A stretch of DNA of 64,000 nucleotides from Blastocladiella emersonii ATCC 22665 (lineage: Eukaryota; Fungi; Blastocladiomycota), in NCBI GenBank assembly GCA_025594325.1, contig JANHCV010000005.1:1364001-1428000 (forward strand), written 5' to 3'. The notes under the pieces are model-generated. The model was not told the origin of the DNA. It saw nothing but the letters and a program-made list of their open reading frames with translations, and did not search any database. The position numbers and the translations under genes are program-made. Below, piece by piece: positions 3,947 through 36,068 of the stretch (positions are counted from its first letter, which is position 1; the number at the start of each line of letters is the position of its first letter).

Positions 3947-4731
3947 ATGTCGCCCTCGCCCTCGTCTACCGCTCCGCCATCCTCCCGCCCGGCCGTCGAC
4001 GTCGACGGCCCCCGCCAGCAGCCGCAGCTTCGACCCGACGCGCGCCCCTCGACCCCGACCTCGGACACCAACGACAGTAACGTCGATCGCGTGCCCTTCT
4101 TCGAGATCATGACCCCGCCCGCCGCGGCCAAGTCCAAGCTGTTCCCGCACCACCTGCACCTGCACCACTCGATCGTCGTCGACACGGCCTCGGCCGCCGC
4201 CGCTGCCTCCGCCAACCCCGAGTCGTCGCTGCCGTCGCCCGACTCGCCCGTCCATCACTCGATCAAGCTGCCCTTCTCGTCGAGCCGCAGCAGCACCAGC
4301 AGCGCGTCGTCGCTTTCGCCCGAGATCACGCGCGCCATCACTCCGCACATGCGCCCCGACGCGTCGTCGCCCGCGTCTGCATCCACGCCGTCGCCGCGCG
4401 GATCGCCGTGTTTCGCCGCCGACTCGCTCGGCACCGCGAGCCAGGCCGCGGACCCCGACCAGCCCGTGTGTCCCGGCATGCCGCCGCCGCCGCCCTCGTC
4501 GTCGTCGGGCAAGAAGTCGGACACGCGCTTGCCGCCGGGTGCGCCCGCCATGGGAACCGCGTGCCCGTCGCCCGCGCAGCAGCAACAGCAACAGCCGTCG
4601 CGCGCGACCGCGGCACCGAGCCCGCATCAAACGTTCCATCAGCAGGCGCCCCTCCCGCGCGACGTGCGCGCCGCACCCGTGCCCCCGCCGTCGCAGTTCC
4701 ACCACCACGCGCAGCAGCTACCGCCGCCGTC

Positions 4732-4763
<32 letters not shown>

Positions 4764-6589
4764 CCAAGCCGCCGTCGTCGGCCCCGGCCCCGCCCGCGCC
4801 CGCGGTCCAGAAGCCCGCAGCGGCCCCGTCGCAGCCGTCGGCAGCGCAGCAGGAGCCCAGCATGACGTCGGCCGAGATGCACCTGCGCGACTGCGAGCTC
4901 AACGCCGATTTTCTCGCGCGGTACGCGCTGCGCGACGAGCTCGGGTGTGGCGGGTTCGGGTTTGTCGTCACGGTACGCTTTTTTGGTGGGTTGCCTCGGA
5001 CGCGTCGCCCATGCTCACTCACGTGCACGCGTCGGTCACTGGATCGCGTAGGCGGTGCGGCGCGAGGACGGTACGTTGGCCGATCGCGGTGTCACGGTGG
5101 GACCCGGGCATCATGAACTGACTGGCGGGCTGTCGGAGTAGGCCACGACGTGGCCGTCAAGTTCATCCTCAAGAATAAGCTCGGCGCGCAGCAGTGGGCG
5201 CGCGACACGGAGCTCGGCGTGGTGCCCATCGAGGTGTACGTGATCAAGAACGTGCGCCACCGCAGCATCATCGACTTTGTCGACTTTTTCGAGGTACGCG
5301 CTTCGCGCTCTGCTGCGTCACGGATCGCGGACTGACTCGCGTTTGGGATGCTAGGACGACAAGTTCTTCTACCTCGTCATGGAGCTGCACGGCGTGTCGT
5401 GGAACTCGGCGCAGCCGCTGACCACGCTCGTGCGCCCGCTGCCGACCCCCGTGTCGCCGCCGCGCGCGCTCCTCGGCGGCGGCGTCTGCGCGCTGCCGCC
5501 CGGCCCCGGCTCGCCCACTGCCGCCAAGTCGTCGTCGCCCACGCTGGCGACCACGTCGTCGGCCATGCTCAACCGCATCCAGCCCGTGCCCGCGCCGACG
5601 CTCGCTGCCGCGGCGCCGTGCATGACGGGGCTCAAGGGCGGCGCGTCGCCCAGCGGCGGCCCGCCGCGCCTCATGAAGCGCAGCATGACCAGCCTCCCGC
5701 CGCCCACCACGCGCATGGCGCCCAAGCTCGGCCGCCGACAGTCCATGGACCTGTTCGAGTGTATCGAGACGGTACGCTTCTTCACCTCATGCTTTGTCAA
5801 GCGGGTGGCGCGCGCACGTGCGGTATCGCGATACCGCGTCGGTCACACGGCCGGTGATCGGATCAGCGCGTCGCGCCGCGCGTGTGATCACCGGGACGCG
5901 GAAACGGGTGCTAACGCGCGACCGGCCTCGGTTTTCGACCCACCTCGATGTAGCACACGCGCATGCCCGAGAAAATTGTGCGGTACATCTTCCGCCAGGT
6001 CGCCGAGGCCGTCGAGGCGCTCAACCGCATGGGGATCGTGCACCGGTACGCTCTGTTCGGATTGGCAGGGACCGGCGAGCGCGCCTGCTCACACGCATCC
6101 CTCGCGCGCAACCGTAGCGACATCAAGGACGAGAACATTGTGATCGACAGCAGCTACCACGTCAAACTGATCGACTTTGGCTCGGCGGCGCAGATCCCGC
6201 CCGCGGGCAAGCTGTTTGACCGGTTCGCGGGGACGGTGCAGTACTGCCCGCCCGAGATCCTGCAGGGCGAAAAGTACCGCGGCCCCGAGCAGGAGATCTT
6301 CACGCTCGGGATCCTCCTGTACGTGCTCATGTTCGCCGAGCCGCCGTTCGCCAACCCGGTCCAGACGATCCAGATGGACCCGCAGATCCCGCCGCGGTCC
6401 CAGCAGCCCGCCGGGTTCACGCCGTTGCCCGTGGGGGTGGTCCGCCCGCCGGGGTACTACCACGCGATCACGGGCTTCTCGGACGCCAGCGTCGGCCTGC
6501 TCCTCTGGATGCTCGCGAAGCGCCCGCGCGACCGCCCGAGTATCGAGCAAGTGCTCCTCCACCCGTGGCTCACGCAGTGCCACGCCTGA
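3947..6589 (+). CDS. PAS-kinase/PIM-like Ser/Thr kinase with a long low-complexity N-terminus; six exons (3947-4972, 5052-5070, 5142-5293, 5355-5771, 5954-6045, 6118-6589)
   Basis: The spliced product reads LGCGGFGFVVTAVRREDGHDVAVKFI, DLFECIE, HRDIKDENIVID, KLIDFGSA, GTVQYCPPEIL, typical of the PASK/PIM group. All GT-AG junctions keep the frame. Start codon uncertain. Confidence 0.8.
4733..4762 (+). repeat. (CAG)10 encoding poly-Gln in the kinase N-terminus
   Basis: Read directly from the sequence. Confidence 0.9.
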
Positions 6590-6703
6590 GCTGCGGGTGT
6601 GCGGGGGTGGTGGTGGAAGGGGAACGTGTCTGTATTGTCGTTGATGAGAGTCTGTCGTTGCAATGTACAGCTGCTGTTTGGCCATGGTCGAGCGCGATCA
6701 GGA

Positions 6704-8055
6704 TCAGTGCTTCTCCATGACGGCGGCCTTGGCGAGGAGCCGCTCGGCCTACACGAACACGAGCGCGCGCGTGTGTTAGTCGGGCGCCGGACCCGGCCCA
6801 GCGTGAACGAGACGGACGCACCCACTTGACGACGGGCATATCGATCATCTTGCCCTCGAGCGTGAACGCGCCGACGCCGCGCGCCACAAACTCGCGGTAC
6901 CCGGCGACGATCTTCTCGGCCCGCATCACCTCCTTCGGTTTCGGCGAGAAATGCTCGTGAATCCCCTCGATCTGGCCCGGGTGGATCGCCTGCTTGCCCG
7001 TGAACCCCATGCACCGGCCCTCGGCGCACTCCTCGGCCAGCACGCCCGCGTCCTTGTAGTCGATGCACACCAGGTCAATCGCCTGCAGCCCGTGCGCGAC
7101 GGCCGCCGTCACGACCGCCGAACGCGCGTACAGGAGCTCGCGCCGGTGTGGAGTGCGGACCATCGACATGTCCGCGCACAGGTCCTCGCTCGCGAAGACG
7201 AGCGCGTCGAGGCGAGGGGAGGAGGAGGCGATCTCGCGCAGGTTCAGCAGGCCCAGGGCCGACTCGATGCACGCGATCAGGCGGATGTTGCCGCGGCTAC
7301 AGGCGGGTGTGGGGGTGTGAGGGATGGGTACGGGAGGAGGGGGAAGGGAGAGGGCGTACTTGGACTCGACGGCGAGCGAGTCGATCATGCGGTCGACAAA
7401 CGCCACGTCCTGCGCCGACTGGACCTTGGGGATCACGATGCACTCGAGGCGGCTGGACCGGAGCTACGTTCGCGTGAGTGTGTGTGAGCGGGGTCCGCCA
7501 GCGACGAGAACCTCGCGCGCAGAACACGTACAATAACCGTCAAATCATCCAGCTCGAGCCCGGTCCCGATCGCGTTGATCCGGACCGCGCGCTCGCGCTT
7601 GCCGAGGTCGAAACTCTACACCCACTCACAATCAGCCCCCGCGTCGCCCGACCCCGACGCGCAGAACCCGCACGCACCTCGAGCGCATCAAACACGAGCT
7701 GCCGCGCACTCCCCTTGCGGTCCATGGGCACGCCGTCCTCGAGATCGAACACGATGCTGTCGGCGGGCAGCGTGCGCGCCTTGGCCATCTTGCGCTCGTC
7801 GCTCCCGGGCACGTTGAACAGCGACCGCCGCACGCGCTCGGGACGGGACAGCGTCGTCGCGCTGGGCGCGGCGGCAGCGATGGACGTGGAGGGCGTGGTG
7901 GTGCTGTTGTACCGGCGCAGGACCAGCGGGGCGGTCGCCGAGGCGCGGAGGGCGACGGCGACGGGGCGCGCAACGACGGGAAGGGCGGCGCGCGAACGCA
8001 GCAGCGTGCGGGCGCCGGCGCGGAGGGCGGACTTGGCCGCCGTGGATGAATACAT
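6704..8055 (-). CDS. CLYBL: Citrate lyase beta-like protein (HpcH/HpaI fold) with a mitochondrial-type presequence; five exons
   Basis: Motifs RRSLFNVPGSDERK, VFDLEDGV, VRINA, IPKV, IESALGL, FASEDLCAD, GFTGKQAIHP.QI, GKMIDMP. N-terminus is Arg/Ala-rich and acid-free. Introns at 7616-7677, 7464-7531, 7297-7359, 6749-6821. Confidence 0.9.
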
Positions 8056-8243
8056 GGTAGGGTGAGCGGTTGTCCTCGACGGGAGAGAGAGCCGGTTGCG
8101 GGCAGACTTCGCCGTTTGGGGTTCGCAGCGGCAGCCGCCACGCGACACCGACGGGTCGGCCGACTTGAACTCCGCGTCCGCTCCCTCTCCCCTCCCCTCA
8201 GCACCACGCCTGCAGCCCATGTAACACACCTACCGCAACTAAC

Positions 8244-9106
8244 ATGTCATCATCCGAAACCTCCTCTTCTTCACCGGCGGGCCGCGACCGGTACCACCGG
8301 ATGCGCGGGACCGGCTCGCCCGCGGCCGACGCGGTGCGGGACCAGGCGCGCCGCCGCGCGCACGAGCGAGCCGCGTCCGCCCGGTCCGCTGTCGTCGAGC
8401 GCGCGCGGCTGCGGCGGGATGCGACCGGGATCGAGGTGCGCTCGCCACCCGCTCCGCCGCGAGCGTGCACTGACCACACCGTCCCGAAAGGAGCTCAAAT
8501 CGCTCGTCCGCGCACACTGGTCCGACTTCGAAGCCTCGTTCACGCCCGACGAGCGCGACGCGCTGGACGCCGACCAGCTCGCGGCGCTCGAGGCCGAGTT
8601 TGTGCGCGAGTGCGAGGACGCGGCGAGCGGCGCCGTGGCAGCGTTGACGCTGACGCCGCCCGCTGACGATCCCGCAGGGTGGATGCCGTCGTCGTCGCAA
8701 TCGTTTGCGATCCCGTCGTCGCCCATGATGCACGCCATGGCCCTCCAGTGCGTCGTGTGCGGCGCACCGGGGCAGATGCAGTTCCAGGGCAACGCGCTGC
8801 GGTGTCGGCAGTGCGCCGTGTGTATCTGGACGGTGCGTAGTGGGGTGTGAGGGGAGGTGGGAGGCGGGCCGCTGACGGTGAGCGGCGTGCGTGTAGCAAG
8901 TCCCGTACGAGGCCGTGGTGCATACCATCGAGCAGACCGAGTGGAACCACTCGCAAATGTACGGCGCGTCCGCCGTCGTCGCGCTCCTCCGCTAACTCGC
9001 GTTGTGTAGCGGCTGCCCGGCACCCCACCTCTCGCGCGGGTACCACCCGGACGAGGGGCTCGTGCTGCACTGCCCCGAGTGCCAGTTCGTCGAGGTCGTT
9101 CTGTAG
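8244..9106 (+). CDS. RPAIN: RPA-interacting protein (RPAIN/RIP)-like; four exons (8244-8435, 8491-8832, 8897-8958, 9010-9106)
   Basis: Basic N-terminal helix, acidic middle, CVVC..CRQC zinc knuckle, then H..C and terminal LHCPECQFVEVVL*, matching RPAIN architecture. Confidence 0.65.
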
Positions 9107-27434: not shown

Positions 27435-29759
27435 ATGAATGACTCCATGCAATCACATGAACAGACCTCGGAAAGCCGCATGTTCGGGGACTTTCCCCCT
27501 GAACTGGTCACCTCTGTCCTTCAGCTCGCGCGGCCCTGTGCTGCCATTGCGGCTTCGTCGAGCATCTTGCTCAATTTGACTTCAGATGATCCTGTTCGCC
27601 TCTACTGGACAGTGCACTTGGTGGTGTGTTACCTCGAAGCGGACAGACTCCACGAACCCGAGCCTGCAAACCCAACATAACGCTTCATCCTGCGGCGCGG
27701 CCATTTCGGCACTGTTGCGCGACCTGCTCCAGCGGCTGGCGAGTTTCCTGTCAATTTTGCCATCGTGTTTCGCCGCCCGGTTCGACCGAGCGACCTGACG
27801 ACAGACACACTTGGTCGACGGTTGCAGGAGTCGACCTGGAGGGTCAACACCCCGGTTTTTTTTTGGCGGCCTCGCTTGTTCAGCTCATCGTCGCGACCGT
27901 CATGTTCAACTGGACTGACCACTTGCGAGGAATTCTCGACGACCTTGTCACCAACTTGCCCCAGCAACTGGATGCGCGACTGGAACTCTCAACGTGGACC
28001 TCGGTTCCCGAAGTCTACTCCGCCGTCATCTTCGGCTCTGACGAATTTACCATGCCCACGGCCCCGCTGCGGTTTGCGGATGCTCTAGGCTACCTTGCCG
28101 TCCTATCATGGAAACGCCCGGTCTTTCAGTTGCTCGTCGGAAATCCACACTACGCCGTTGATGTATCGGCTCTGACCGAGCTCTTTTTCACAGAGGGCCC
28201 CGCGTGCTTCGTCCGCCTGACTGCCATGTCTCGGCGCAGTATCCCTGAAGCTGCCGAGCATTTCTACGACATTTTCGCGTGGCTGCTCGAGCACGGTTCG
28301 AATATGCCCACAACTATTCGCAAAATCTACGTTGACGCTGCTGTTAACGCGGGCCATGGGCTCTTCATCCCTCCTCCTTGCTAAATTCTCAGACCTGATG
28401 CTCCCTGCACTTGAAATCGACCCCGAACTTGATGAGGCCCGCGTCGTGTCGCTGCGTCCCTTGAGCGATGACGCACCCGAACAACTTGGAGCGAACATCA
28501 TCGGCTGGTTTGACAAGGACTTGCCCGTTGAGGACGTCAAGCTGCTCGATGCTCACGGATTGATTGCGCCCCAGTGGCGGAGCTCGATTCTCGGCGCGGC
28601 CCTTGCCCGAATGCCCGAAACGAGCTGGACTTTGTCGCGTGGCTTCACGATTGGGACGACGACGAGGAATGGTCGGCGCTGATTCTTGAAGGTGCGTATC
28701 TGTTCCCTGGGATTTAGCAACTCGAGAGGTAGTGTGAGCTAACCCAGTGTGACGCGTGATCCGGGTCTAGCCTTTTGTGTCGGCCGCGCTTGGTCTCGCA
28801 CAAAGCTCAATGGTATTGGCCAAGCCGTGCTTCGCTATGCGCTTGTCCCGGGTCCATGAAAAAATGGCGACGTTCAACTTGCTCTGAGCGAATTCGTTGA
28901 CGCCAACGCTGCTTATTTGGATCGCGATGATGCCGGTGCAAGTGCCGCGTTTCTCGTTGACAGCAGCACTATTGAAGTCGACAACTATGTGCACAGGATC
29001 ACCATCCCCGTTGAGCTCTTCGAATCGCTTGTCTTGCCGACGCAGAGCGAAGCGTGGACATGGGTGACGGCGCTGGATCTCTCATGGTTACTCGTGTTCG
29101 CTCACTCTATCGGGATGACCGGGGCTTGGCCAATCCCTGCAATCAAATTATCGGGCGCCGCGCACCTGTATCTCCACGCTATGATCCGAGCCTACTTCCC
29201 ACCGCTTCAGGATGGCTACACAATGGAAGACTATGACGAGCGCGATAGCTCGTTCGCAAAGCTGTGCCCGACTTGCACGCTTACGGCACAACAAGCATGG
29301 CGTACCTTCCTTTCAGAGCTTCACAAGCTGTGCACGTCGGAGCACTTGACGTGGCCATTTCCGCGCGTCGCCAACTTGTGGTCGCTGTTATGCAAGAGTG
29401 CCCAGATCGAGGGCAGTCTGGACTTGCCCAAACCTGAACTGAGTTGTTCTTGCGACCGGTTCGCGTCTGCCCAGCTCGTCGCAAGCTTGCTGTTTGATTT
29501 CCATCGGCAACAAGCATTTGACGCGCTGCGTAGCGAGATCGATGCGGGCGCGCTCACGTTGAACGTCCTCAGCTTGCTTCCTGACGGTGCACTGGATAGC
29601 TGCGCTTCGCCCGCAGAGTTGGCTGACATTGTACACAAACTGGCTACACATGACGGAGCAGATGAGCTGCGCCGAATCGCGGCTGCCCTCGCATTCGAAC
29701 GAGTAGCACCTATGGCTTCAATGCTCGTCAAACTCAACGTGCCGTCCGCTACGCGATAA
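27435..29759 (+). pseudogene. F-box-like family copy C1 (frameshifts and stops; intron 28692-28770)
   Basis: FGDFPPELVTSVLQLA motif; colinear with 41830-44078; phase-1 intron followed by AFCVG, as in C3. Confidence 0.75.
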
Positions 29760-30539
29760 CACCTTCCACGAATAATACAAACTTCGTGTTATGAAGTTGT
29801 ATGTTTCCGTTTTCAAGTGCACGCAATGAGGCTGCCCGAGAGCTCCGACTTGCGAGGCGACGCGTTGCGCCATGGCGTGACCACGGCGAACGCTGATTGG
29901 CCGCAGCTCAAGCGGTTCATCATCGTGGTCAACATTTGGCTGGGGCAGAGCTGGGGGGCTTGTCCCCCACCTCGCGCACCGCTGTCCACACGCTATCTTC
30001 TCTCCAGAGAAAGCCCACATACTCACAAATCGCGATGAATGACTCCATGCAATTACACTCTCAACCCCCCAGAAGGCATTGTTTCGAGGACCTTCCTGCA
30101 GAATTGGTCATTTCCGTGCTTCAACTTGCGCTGCCGCGGGCTACCGTCACCGCGACGTCGGCGCTTCTGTATGCGGTGGCCTCGGATAGCCCAGTAAACC
30201 ACATTTGGACCCTTGCTTCGCTTAACCATCACCTTGAATCGTATCTGCTTCAAGGGAGGAAAGTACCAGAGAATTTGGACGACCGCATCAGCACAACCCC
30301 CGTATTGAGCCCAACTTGCCCGCTCACAGAGCAGCAAGTTTGGCGTGACCTTACCACTGCGCTTCACGATCGATGTGTGTCGGAGCGTCTGACATGGCCC
30401 TTTCCACGCGTTGATAGATTGTGGTCGCTGCTGTGCAGGGTAGCCCAAGTCGACGGCAATCGTGACCTTGCCCAGCGTAACGTGGGTTGTCCTTGTGAAC
30501 GGTTAGCGTCTGCGAAGCTCGTTGCGAGCTTCCTCTTCG

Positions 30540-33500
30540 CATCACCAAACCGCGCCTGCCGAGGGCCCATGGATCCAGGGTGGATCCACCTTGAGCCTTC
30601 CAGCGCTGGATCCAGCATTAATCTAGCGCTGGATCCAGATTTCGCAGACTGGATCCACCATCATGGAAGGTGGATCCAGCCTTGACTGAGATGAGCTGGA
30701 ATGAGCTTCGCGGCGACCTGGATCGAGACGTTGATCCATTTCCTTGAAAGTCGACCCACACCTTGATCCACGCGCCCTGGATCAACTTGTTGTAAATGTA
30801 GTTCTAGGCGTCGATCTACGTCTGTATCCAACTCTTGCTCAGGCAGAACCAGGAGCTGATCGACGGTGAACATGGTGGTGAAGGAACTCGTGCGAAAATG
30901 TATCGAAATGGTCGCAACGACCCGGCAAACCATGCGAGGAAGCCGAACGCAACTAGACGTGTTCGTGCTGCTGCAGGTCCGTCTCGGTCCACATCCAAAG
31001 CTCACGGCACGGCCACACGCTTGCAGCGAGTGATTCATGGATCATTCATAGAGTGCGACGTCGCGGTACCGTCGCCGGGAGGAGAGAGCGCGGCGCTGCA
31101 GCGAAGCGCGAGCCGCAAAACGCGTCGAAGCCAACGCGCTCACGTGAGCGCGTCGATCGTTTCAGCCGCGTTCGCTTTTCGCGGACTTCGCGCCGCGGCG
31201 GCTCGCACTCTCTCGCCCCACCACCAACAGCCATGCTATCGACCCACCCAACACCCGCGACCTCGCGCAACCGCCTGCACCGTCACCCCTCGCCCTCCAT
31301 GTATCTCACGTCGACGCGCATCCGCCCAGCGCCGCCACGCGTCCGCGGCACGGTGACCCCACGGTACGCGTCTCTCCCCTTCTCCGAGGTCTCTCCCTCC
31401 TCGCGACGTGCATCCACAGCCATGCCTCGAGACCCGCGATACGCCCTGCACGCTTCGGCGGGTCTTGCGCCTGCTGCGCTTGATGCTCGCGCCGCGTTCC
31501 CACGCCCTCCGCGCCGGCTGTCCGTTCGCTCGCTGACGCGTCACACGGTCACCTTGCTCTCTTTCGTAGCCTTCGAGATGCACATCAAGCTGCAGCGGCG
31601 CTCGTGGGGGCCGTCGTGACGCACCCGCGTCGATCTTGACCATGGTCGCAACAAGGTGCGCCGTGTGCGGCTCGGTCTCCTGCTCCCACGGGCCGAGACT
31701 CACATGTTCGCGAACTCCATCGGTAGGGCGCCAAGTACGCCAAGCGGCTACGACAAGCGCCGCGCCTTCGCCCGCCAGGCCAACTCGTGTGCGACGCGCT
31801 CAAGGCTACACGGTACGGGCCTTCTCCTTCGCGTTCTCGGCGTGATTCGCGCTGATCATGGGCACGGACAGGCTCCGAGCTCCCGAGCGACATCGCTCGT
31901 GTCGTCGGCCCAGATCCTGGCGACGCGGCCCGTCCGTTCGCGCCATGTGTATACTTCGCCCGATCCCTTGCTCACTTGTCTCCGCCACGTCACCCATAGC
32001 CTCGGTCAACCACGACAAGCCTCAACGGTGCTCCAGAACACGCGGCGAGGTCTCGCTGCTCGGGTCGTCGCTGGCCTCAAGCACGCGCCTGGCTGCACGT
32101 GCGAGTCCGAGTTCGAGGTACGCGACTCGGTCAACACGCGCCCATGGACCGAAGCTGACACGGCCGATTTGAGTAGTTCATCCAGTACGTCAAGCTGCAG
32201 CGGCAAGGGTCGCCTCGTCGTCTGCCCTTGTGGCGCGCGCGAGGTCATGCGGCGTCGATCTCATACACCCGCATCAAGGACTGGAACCTCAAGTACAAGC
32301 TCGGGATCAAGGATATCGAGGCGTTTTGGAAGGAGGTACGCGGACGCGGCGTGGGTCGCCGCGGTGGCAGTTGCTGATGCCGCTTCCGTGTCGCTCACCA
32401 AGGCCCTGCAGACGATCCGCAAGCCGTTCAAGGAAAAGTCGGAGTGGGTCGACCTCGTGCAGGTGGCCGCCGACAACTCGTGCATCATCACCAACAAGGT
32501 CGGCGAAAAGAAGTCGCTCACCAAGCAGTGGCTGGTTGGCGAGGCACCCGAGGAGCTCCACCGCGCCACGATGGCCATGGTCGACGAGTACGACGACGCC
32601 GAGCTCGACATGGATTTCGCCGACGCCGACGTCGATGCGGCGATGTCGGTCCGCGCGTGCCGTGGTGCTCACCCGCTGTACCTGTCCTTCCTCGACCGAC
32701 TCCTCTTTGGGCAGGCGAACGACATGGCCAACGCTCGAGGCTCGAACCAGTCGTCGCACGGTACGCCTTTGCTCACCAAGTCGCACTCGATCCCGTCGCT
32801 CACGTTCCGCACTGTAGCCAAGCGCATGGCCGGCTACGCGATTGTCAACGACCTCAAGCTGCTCGACATCAACAAGCCCTTCCCGATCGACGGGTCAAGT
32901 CCGGTGTGGCGCATCATGGCCGCGGTCGCTGTCCTTGTACGTTTTGCTCATGCAATCTGCCGGGTTCCTCCGTTCGCCTTCGCCCTCTCTGACTTCACCG
33001 CGATGCACGCTCGCTGCTTTCTAGTGTGCATGGCGCATCACTGGGAGCGCGTACCAACAAGGTATCATCGTCGGCCTGACCAAGAAGGACGCCAAGGTGA
33101 CGCTCGCCGACTACTACGACGCCTTCCTCGTCTCGCGCACAGGTTCGTTTTCCGTCGCCAAGCGCATCTACCTGGCCTCGCGGCTCCGCGCGCTGTTCAA
33201 GCGTGGGATCCTCAACATCAGCCTCGCCGAGATCGCCCAGCAGAACACGGGCGTCGAGACGACCAAGACCCAGGCGGCTATGACCGTCGACATTGCGAAC
33301 GACATCTGCCCCGACGAGTAGCTGCGCCATACCACATCTCGGGTGGCGGGGTGTGCAGCGGGCGGTGCGAGCGCATCAAGGGCTGGTTCCCTTCCTTCAT
33401 CTCGACCTCTCTGCGCACTCCATGGTCATCGTTGTGGGGCGTACGCGTGTGTATATATTGAACCGTTCGACCCTTGATTCGCTCGTGGATCTTGAGTGCG

Positions 33501-33859
33501 CTTACGTGGATTGCGACGTGGATCAGCGCCTCGACTCGGGCTATAACCAAATGGATCCACGCCAAGGTCGAGTTGATCGTCAAACTGATCGACGCAAGGA
33601 TCCATGTTTATCGTGGCCTAGTTCCGTGCCTGGATTGCGATATTACTTTCCTGGATCCAGCTCGCGATCCACCTTGACCAAAACCTGGATCCATCTGAGA
33701 GGTCCGCACGGTTTGCGGGTGGATCCAGCTCGCCCAAACTTGATCCACGCTTGATCCAGAAAAGTAATATCGGGATCCACATTCCCCCAAGGTCCATCCA
33801 GTCCACGGCTGGATCCAGGGTGGATCCACTTCAAATGGCTGGGGCACGGTTTGGTGATG
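30540..33859. mobile_element. 3,320-bp TIR DNA transposon with CACTA/CMC-like architecture; no recognisable DDE transposase
   Basis: 17-bp TIRs CATCACCAAACCG(C/T)GCC (16/17 match). TSD TCG at 30537-30539 and 33860-33862. Six perfect TGGATCCA palindromes near each end. Confidence 0.88.
31642..33321 (+). CDS. Multi-exon orphan gene carried inside the transposon; 5' exon structure uncertain
   Basis: Repeated GT(A/G)CG..YAG introns. High-GC3 exons YTRIKDWNLKYKLGIKDIEAFWKE, ALQTIRKPF..MAAVAVL and CAWRITGS..DICPDE*. Phase conflicts in the 5' exons. Confidence 0.55.
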
Positions 33860-34669
33860 TCGTTTCTCATCAACAGCAGGCCTTTGACACGCTACGCAAC
33901 GAGATTCAATCGGACGTCGACTTGGCCGTTCTGCGCTTGCTTCCTAATGCTGTGTTGGATTCCTGCGCCTCCATCAACGAGTTGGCCGACCTTGTGAACA
34001 AACTGGTTATTCACGAACGCCTTGGAAGCAAAGACGCGACCTTTTTCGCCAAGGAATTCACCTTTCCGACTGTCCCCCCAGGCCGAGGCTTGTGCCCGGG
34101 CGGTGTCATCATGTGAGCGGCGCTGGGGGGAAAACCCGCACCGCATCGCACGGGGAATCGGCTCACGTGGTGGCGTTTCAGCCACACAGTGGGGGCGGTC
34201 AGAAAGGTCTATTCCTTCGAGTCGCGCCCGCGACCTCCAGGCCCGTCCTGGTATTGCTTGCGTCCGCGTTCAATGGCGTAAAGTAGTGAGTTTTATTCTC
34301 AGCAGTAGGCTGAGTTTCTGTGGAGCTGAATTCGCGCTCAAGCTGGGTGGGCCATTTGTCACGCCTGACTTTTCTGCCACTCCCATCAACACGCGTCGCG
34401 ACGCGTCTCGGTCGAGCTCGAATTATCTTCTCCTCAATTTTCTCCAAATCCTCTTAATAAATCTACCCTCTAACTCTATGCAACTCAACTAAAATCGTCT
34501 GGGGTACAGTTCGACGTCGGAATACTCTCCGTGTACCTGACCTCTCACTCTTCCCGCTCCTCCCGCGGCCACTGTGCATATCCTTTACATTTCCTCCGTC
34601 CTTCATGTCCTACGTGGGCATCCACACGCTTCCCTGACGCTTTGATCTAATTCACCGCTTACGCGTATT

Positions 34670-36068
34670 GTGTCTCGCGTGTTCGCCGCAATGCACTTGC
34701 GCATCGACGCGCTATACCCGATCCGCGGCCATCGTCCGTTTGGCGGCCTGCACGTCCTTGCGTTTGGCGACTTTTTCCAGTTCGAGCCCGTCATGGCCCG
34801 CTCGCTCACGGTTCCATCTGAGCAGCCGGTCGAACGCGCACCCGAACCCGAGGTGGATGCAGCTCATGATGGCGACTAGATGCAGGTCGACGGCGAGCCT
34901 CAGCAGCAGCAGCAGCAGCAGCAGAAGAAGCGCGCGTCCAATAGCAAGGAGCGGCCAGCGGTCAGCAGAACTCGAACTGACGCCAACATTGGTCGCGATC
35001 AGTGGCTCGCCTTCGACTCGGTCTGCTTCCTCGTGCAGCAGATGCGGCAGTCGGGCGACGCGAGCTTCCTCAACGTGCTCCAGGACCTGCGCAACTGCAT
35101 CGTCTCGCAGCGCGTGATCGAGTACCTCGGCTCGCGGCGAGCAGACGTCGTACTGGGCCAGCACCCAGGCCAGCTCGACGACTGGAGCGACCAGGTCCTC
35201 ATCACGGCGCAGAACTCGGTGCGCGACGCGTGGAACTCGATGGCCGCCGCGAAACACGCGCGTCGCCTCGGTCTCCAACCCGACGAAATCTTTGACCTCG
35301 AGTGCGTCTATCTCGTCCGCAAGCCCTCCACAACCGGACCACTCCTTTGGCGGCAGCTCGCCATTGAGAGCAGCGGTCAGAGCGAGAGCGACCAGCGCAT
35401 GCTCAACTTCGCAAAACTGCTTCCCTCGAGCAAGACGGGCCACATCCCGTCTACCCTCAAGCTGTTTGCTGGCGCGCGTGTCATCGTGACGCGGAACATC
35501 CAACACGCCGTACGTCTCCGCGTCATATTCGCCGGCCATTAGGCGCGTGGACTCACCAGCGCTTCCTCGCTTCGCATCGTGTAGTCGCGGCATCGTCAAC
35601 GGCGTCATTGGCCGTGTTGAAGGCTTTGCCACCGACGCGAACAACGACATTGATGCAGTCATCATCCGGCCCAACAAGGATCTGGGTCGCATGCCCAACC
35701 TACCCGGGATCCCCGACGGCTGCTTCCCGCTGCGCCGCGAGATCGCCTCGTTCCGCCTCAAGAACAAGGTGGCCGGCACATCCAAGACGATCCATCGAGC
35801 CCAGTTCCCGCTCGAGCTCGCGTACGCGCTGACGGCGCACAAGGCCCAAGGGATGACCCTCGAAAAGGTCATCGTTGATCTCGCCGACATGACGCGTGGA
35901 TCGTTACCGTCGCGCTTCCTGTACATGATCCTATCGCGTGTACGGCGCGGTGGCGACATCCTGATCCTACGTGATCCAGGTATCCAAGGCCTGAATGAAA
36001 CACAGGATCAACATTTACTTGCCGAGTACGCTCGACTGCAAAGTCTGGCGGAGGCAACCACTACCTAG
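34670..36068 (+). pseudogene. 5'-truncated PIF1-family (SF1B) helicase, Helitron-like
   Basis: Motifs PFGGLHV..FGDFFQ.EPV, QQMRQSGD..F..L..LR, GARVIVTRN, NGVIG, QFPLELAYALTAHKAQGMTL and YMILSRVR. Walker A/B are missing, there is an in-frame TAG at 34877-34879, and the intron at 35510-35584 appears 1 nt out of phase. Confidence 0.85.

Follow-up and report, generated by a model that had tools for sequence, protein, structure and literature searches.

Arrays of short repeats in both subterminal regions are classic for CACTA elements, and in En/Spm these motifs are bound by TnpA, which pairs the ends. EnSpm has been grouped with Mirage, Chapaev, Transib and Plavaka in the CMCT clade, characterized by CA..TG ends and duplications of 2 to 5 bp (PMC12730594). 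In PlavakaB, the termini read 5'-CATCA..TGATG-3' and the duplications are of 2 or 3 bp (Kojima 2025, Biology 14:1741, PMC12730594). Here, we describe a 3,320-bp element of Blastocladiella emersonii ATCC 22665, located at positions 30540-33859 of a 64-kb stretch of contig JANHCV010000005.1 (assembly GCA_025594325.1), referred to below as the window. We consider it probable that this element is a defective copy of a non-autonomous cut-and-paste DNA transposon with PlavakaB-type ends.

The element is bounded by a 17-bp terminal inverted repeat (TIR) matched at 16 of 17 positions (consensus CATCACCAAACCG(C/T)GCC), which has only two matches within the window. Sequence comparison placed the left TIR, CATCACCAAACCGCGCC, at 30540-30556 on the plus strand, while repeat comparison and end alignment placed the right TIR, the reverse complement of CATCACCAAACCGTGCC, at 33843-33859 on the minus strand. 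Direct reading of the flanks revealed a TCG on either side (30537-30539 and 33860-33862). The element separates the two halves of a plus-strand open reading frame (ORF), identified by ORF reading and paralogue alignment at 29897-30539 (5' half) and 33863-34116 (3' half), and a tandem paralogue lacking the insertion sits about 1 kb upstream. This neighbouring gene copy provides an empty site (29475-29522, plus strand). Indeed, excising the element together with one TCG yields LVASFLFVSHQQQAFD, which aligns without gaps across the junction to LVASLLFDFHRQQAFD at 29475-29522, at the DNA as well as the protein level, and the paralogous site carries a single triplet (29494-29496). With the element and one TCG removed, the 3' half is in frame with the 5' half, in good agreement with the restoration of the host reading frame on which the original prediction had relied. 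The insertion has turned the gene at 29897-34116 into a pseudogene: the window copy interrupted the coding sequence of a single member of the tandem family and thereby inactivated it.

Using paralogues of the protein encoded within the element (the cargo protein), we recovered eight further copies on seven other contigs. The genome thus harbors at least nine copies, distributed over eight contigs; their flanks are unrelated and their common ends exact to the base. Just three copies are contiguous from one end to the other, namely the window copy, L001 and L003; the latter two are full length, at 3,868 bp (L001, 4347-8214) and 3,769 bp (L003). The copies in L001, L003, L006 and L008 are 94-96% identical to the window copy. 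The left 17-mer of the window element also terminates the copies in L001, L004, L006, L007 and L008, and that of L003 differs from it by one mismatch. The termini read CATCACC...GGTGATG in the window and wherever another copy has a complete end. When we aligned ends from other loci, seven left and five right, similarity stopped exactly at CATCACC and GGTGATG, identity being about 95% inside the element among the aligned ends, with no similarity outside the termini. A segmental duplication or an assembly artefact bounded by inverted repeats by chance, with no mobile element involved, is favored by nothing but the repetitive nature of the region as a whole. This reading is contradicted by the nine copies on eight contigs with their unrelated flanks and base-exact ends, and it is refuted by two independent empty sites; we give it practically no credence.

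The second empty site concerns L003. Its flanks belong to another dispersed repeat, an uninterrupted copy of which is present in L004 (2082-2163, 92-97% identical to the L003 flanks). This site reads ...AAAACG GA GCCCGTG..., and the insertion in L003 duplicated exactly GA. The two-ended copies with a duplication are thus flanked by TCG / TCG (window) and GA / GA (L003). The paralogous empty sites of the two copies show that duplications of both lengths, 2 bp and 3 bp, arise within a single family. The dispersed repeat itself was seen at L003:4143-4442 and 8212-8511, L004:1815-2421 and L001:3355-3492.

Taken together, the TIR, the end alignment and the empty sites agree with the proposal in the original prediction of a TIR transposon with CAT..ATG ends. 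The 3-bp duplication TCG, also proposed there, holds for the window copy, where the paralogue confirms it, but it is not a constant of the family, as L003 has 2 bp. Similarly, the description of the element as complete is correct for its ends but not for its interior, which, as detailed below, has suffered an internal deletion and lacks a transposase, the parental 3.87-kb element having no recognizable transposase either.

We then compared the ends with those published for PlavakaB. The window end CATCACCAAACCGCG matches that of PlavakaB-1_AuSu, CATCACGAAACAGGG, at 10 of the first 12 bases (CATCACGAAACA versus CATCACCAAACC), and no terminal string in the supplementary sequences of PMC12730594 was closer. 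The further PlavakaB ends given there are CATCAGAAATTT, CATCAGTAAATG and CATCAGCATTTT (Figure S2, which also holds the PlavakaB-1_AuSu end) and CATCTGGAAATG (PlavakaB-1_GyCo, Table S1), and PlavakaB ends other than that of PlavakaB-1_AuSu read CATCAG-(N)-AAAT. The family therefore shares with PlavakaB the CATCA..TGATG termini and the duplications of 2 or 3 bp (GA in L003, TCG in the window, none in L001). Under this assignment, a DDE transposase of the CMCT type, encoded elsewhere in the genome, would recognize the CATCACC... termini and excise the element, and the same trans-acting enzyme would reinsert it via a 2- to 3-nt staggered cut.

The element could instead be a non-autonomous member of another superfamily (EnSpm/CACTA, Mirage, Chapaev or PIF/Harbinger-ISL2EU [PHIS]) whose CATCA ends have converged on those of PlavakaB. 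With 10 or 11 sites of the type TGGATCCA, an 8-bp palindrome, within about 290 bp of each end, the element has the subterminal arrays that textbooks give as classic for CACTA, and no transposase was found in the full-length copy or among the 35 longest ORFs of the window. Moreover, CA..TG ends with 2- to 5-bp duplications are common to all CMCT lineages, and PHIS elements make duplications of 0, 2 or 3 bp (PMC12730594). We nevertheless regard this alternative as unlikely. The termini differ from the CACTA or CAC..GTG ends of EnSpm, and the duplication is not constantly 3 bp, that of L003 being 2 bp as judged from its empty site. TCG and GA also differ from the TWA or TA typical of Harbinger/PHISTA and of PHIS. 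Finally, the match at 10 of 12 bases is to a published PlavakaB terminus, and the mixture of 2- and 3-bp duplications in one family is what has been reported for PlavakaB (PMC12730594). The layout noted in the original prediction, CACTA/CMC-like with ends that start neither CAC nor CCC, is in agreement with the short TIR, the subterminal arrays and the CATCACC..GGTGATG termini found here.

Our searches for a transposase were negative. No transposase family was detected at an E value of ≤1 in 31 six-frame ORFs of at least 75 amino acids (aa) from the full-length L001 copy (4347-8214), and no transposase was present in the genes called around the nine copies, in the fetched flanks or among the window's 35 longest ORFs. 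A PlavakaB element would be expected to encode a DDE transposase that carries C(2)C and H(3-4)H motifs and groups phylogenetically with PlavakaB; the frames of the full-length copy, the genes neighboring the nine copies and these 35 ORFs contained no transposase domain. The longest ORFs of the window are ordinary genes, including those for DNA polymerase epsilon, Argonaute, Spo11 and kinases. The ORFs around L007 gave no relevant Pfam hit, and the 10 kb beyond the oligopeptidase gene next to L007 contained no TGGATCCA arrays. A scan of JGI metagenomes for the TIR plus the motif returned 10 chance matches, with one TGGATCCA each. As judged from the copies examined, the family is non-autonomous, and the window element is a defective member of it.

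Full-length copies carry two genes, a spliced one on the plus strand (348-440 aa as annotated) and a small one on the minus strand (111-152 aa; 183 aa in L008). When homologues of the small gene were sought, only one new locus came up, L008, a truncated copy. While the copies in L001, L003, L006 and L008 are of the type of about 3.8 kb with the small gene, the window copy lacks this gene owing to a 545-bp internal deletion. The deletion junction (30974-30977) reads GCTGCAGG followed by TCCGTC, and copy alignment identified CAGG at both parental breakpoints, i.e., a microhomology. The same CAGG junction is found in the L007/L009 copy, the left flank of which is unrelated to that of the window copy. 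Since an identical junction occurs at two loci with unrelated left flanks, the 545-bp deletion derivative itself appears to have transposed, as Ds or dSpm elements do. The deletion would stem from interrupted gap repair after excision, and the shortened element would then have moved in trans.

The plus-strand gene, here called the cargo gene, lies at 31727-33321 of the window and has GT-AG introns (GenBank H9P43_005126, partial, 394 aa). According to the annotation and homologue searches, it is found only inside family copies. Because all detected homologues lie within such copies, the cargo gene is specific to the element and was not acquired recently from the host; both H9P43_005126 and its paralogues represent cargo of the transposon. 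Neither the cargo exons (at E ≤ 1) nor the flanking ORFs had a Pfam hit, and an HMMER search with the large exon against 1.84 billion representatives found no credible homologue outside B. emersonii. Two candidates, P0008 and P0009, were rejected as cargo homologues: both are of low complexity with mixed unrelated weak Pfam hits, and one gave no BLASTP alignment. When a cargo profile was compared to PDB sequences, the best E value was 0.13, with none below 0.1, and an AlphaFold2 model built on an alignment of six paralogues was unusable (predicted local distance difference test [pLDDT] of 29). A tyrosine-recombinase-like reading of 'SHS...FR' and 'WRITGSAY' was dropped for want of profile support. 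The cargo gene shows no clear purifying selection among copies: the pooled ratio of nonsynonymous to synonymous polymorphism (pN/pS) is about 0.8 (five copies, with one small exon taken in the wrong frame), variable sites are evenly spread over codon positions (26/19/27), and several copies contain stops or frameshifts. An 18-nt string, AC(A/G)TCAAGCTGCAGCGGC, occurs with its surroundings twice in the cargo region (31582-31599 and 32187-32204), which is consistent with an internally duplicated exon.

These data also bear on whether the full-length 3.87-kb element might be autonomous, its orphan protein of about 400 aa (apparently all-helical) or that of about 125-150 aa being an unrecognized recombinase of a new transposon class. 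Such a proposal would accommodate the occurrence of the larger gene only inside family copies, with no host parent gene, as well as the absence of a transposase gene from every copy and from the fetched flanks. We judge it very improbable, given that a DDE group already known has ends and duplications of this kind and that a derivative devoid of the small gene was nonetheless able to reach another locus. Furthermore, most copies have stops or frameshifts in the large gene, whose pN/pS and codon-position counts are those given above, and its product shows no catalytic motif, no Pfam or PDB hit and no usable model. By the yardstick of a recognizable transposase or recombinase of its own, the element is not autonomous.

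The perfect palindrome TGGATCCA occurs 12 times in the 64-kb window, always within the two subterminal zones; shuffled sequences averaged 0.56 such sites, with no more than 3 in any of them. The sites start at 30570, 30581, 30607, 30630, 30650 and 30671 on the left and at 33552, 33652, 33686, 33720, 33810 and 33821 on the right, exactly as listed in the original prediction and nowhere else. Allowing one mismatch, the left array (30570-30830, conserved in seven copies) comprises 11 sites, 6 perfect and 5 degenerate, and the right array (33552-33828, defined by motif count and copy alignment) comprises 10, 6 perfect and 4 degenerate, which also bears out the many degenerate copies noted earlier. 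The extended site, S-TGGATCCA-S, is often a perfect 10-bp palindrome. The perfect sites of the left array start at offsets 31, 42, 68, 91, 111 and 132 from the element end, and the outer edges of those on the right lie 32, 43, 81, 102, 113 and 133 nt from the other end. The arrays are thus mirrored, with sites at about 31, 42, 112 and 132 nt from both ends, and the outermost ones lie 30 nt (left) and 31 nt (right) inward, as the claim of symmetry had it. The distance between neighboring sites is mostly 11 or 20-21 nt, that is, one or two helical turns. The 20-mer TGGATCCAGGGTGGATCCAC, described as direct rather than inverted, indeed occurs in identical direct copies at 30570 and 33810. As both of its 8-mers are palindromic, this orientation is a small matter: it resides only in the GGG spacer and the last base, and the two stretches remain complementary at 16 of 19 positions.

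A repeat search further revealed, within the right array, a pair of 31-nt inverted repeats (33631-33661 and 33749-33779) around an 87-nt segment. The block 33631-33779 is inverted in L003 (7983-8131) relative to all other copies, with a reverse-strand match of 95-97% in L003 versus about 70% in the other copies. This inversion probably arose by recombination between the 31-nt repeats.

By analogy with En/Spm, the phased and mirrored arrays are candidates for sites at which a dimeric protein binds and brings the two ends together. Such a dimer, which would be either the DNA-binding domain of the transposase or an accessory factor like the En/Spm TnpA, would bind the GATC-core palindromes, of which each 290-bp subterminal zone holds roughly 10. 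It is highly doubtful that the element's own orphan proteins, chiefly the helical one of about 400 aa, bind TGGATCCA and also cut and join the DNA, with no Plavaka transposase needed. If they did, orphan proteins with a cutting and joining role would be an unrecognized class of eukaryotic transposase. In a milder version of this idea, the protein of about 400 aa would bind the arrays in the manner of TnpA and thereby enable an element that has no transposase to capture one of the Plavaka type.

Several points weigh against our assignment of the element to a transposon family with PlavakaB-type ends that is mobilized in trans. First, no Plavaka or other transposase with these ends was found in the copies and flanks examined, and the putative membership in the Plavaka group stands on some 12 terminal bases plus the duplication length. 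Second, the L001 flanks show no matching duplication (GTC / GCT), and a chimeric copy in L006 is flanked by CGA / CGT. Third, the binding of TGGATCCA by a protein is a sequence-based proposal, and the similarity of about 95% among copies is too high for the conservation of motif and spacer to be compared. Lastly, every published PlavakaB family comes from Agaricomycotina (PMC12730594), and neither this paper nor its supplements mention a blastoclad. Titles in the literature do, however, report Plavaka-type transposases from well outside Agaricomycotina.

The original prediction had suggested an undescribed CMC-related or new family, to be abandoned upon a match to a catalogued one. The relationship to CMC elements holds, and at the level of the group there is such a match, since the PlavakaB kind of ends and duplications was already described in 2025; what is new is the family. 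Because PMC12730594 lists no Blastocladiomycota, the family itself is probably uncatalogued, and "undescribed" applies to it alone.

Compared to PlavakaB, the family has the same CATCA..TGATG termini, a short TIR and a duplication length that can be 2 or 3 bp in a single group. However, it lacks both a Plavaka transposase and a TET/JBP gene, it is found in a blastoclad rather than an agaricomycete, and its members are shorter (3.3-3.9 kb versus about 6-9 kb). Its dense arrays of GATC-core 8-bp palindromes are also absent from the account of Plavaka in PMC12730594. With En/Spm (CACTA), it shares a short TIR, a 3-bp duplication and a short motif repeated in both subterminal regions, and, as for dSpm, its internal-deletion derivatives are non-autonomous and would be moved in trans. 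Unlike En/Spm, it has CATCACC rather than CACTA ends and also makes 2-bp duplications, and its motif is a perfect palindrome instead of an oriented 12-mer.

Some of the copies are associated with further features. In L002, a 427-bp insert (AGTTGAAGCG...CACTTGAACT, with a short imperfect TIR) lies inside the right TIR of the copy (L002:9314-9740) and is flanked on both sides by GTTTG, a 5-bp duplication. The same 0.43-kb insert family adjoins the truncated copy in L004 (8238-8614), where the 8-mer CTCCCCCG occurs immediately to the left of the copy and again immediately to the right of the insert, a puzzling arrangement. The L006 copy has the identical 17-bp TIR followed by a different 440-bp left arm (L006:6375-6816), which joins the TGGATCCA family at position 462. 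The motifs of this arm are relaxed GATC-core palindromes (TCGATCCA, TCGATCGA and TTGATCAA), and the copy represents a sister subfamily or else a recombinant. Another copy, which is more diverged (82% identity) and starts with GGTCGT and not CATCAC, lies 4 kb away (L006:14337-16797), and the two together span about 10.6 kb. Just downstream of the insertion in the window, ORFs at 34670-35117 show, when read by eye, a PIF1-helicase-like motif (FGG..VL.FGDF.Q..PV); a Pfam scan of the neighboring ORFs 34880-35539 (plus strand) and 34712-35959 (minus strand) gave no significant hit.

To our knowledge, the DNA transposons of Blastocladiomycota are almost unstudied. One survey that included a single blastoclad genome found very few DNA transposons, if any, there and in chytrids (PMC5751038). 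The family described here would extend the PlavakaB end signature from mushroom-forming fungi to this early-branching phylum. Its two clean pairs of filled and empty sites show that duplication length varies within one family, and its helically phased array of 8-bp palindromes is a testable candidate binding site for the Plavaka-type group. For the annotation of the B. emersonii genome, H9P43_005126 and its paralogues should be treated as transposon cargo and the gene at 29897-34116 as a pseudogene.

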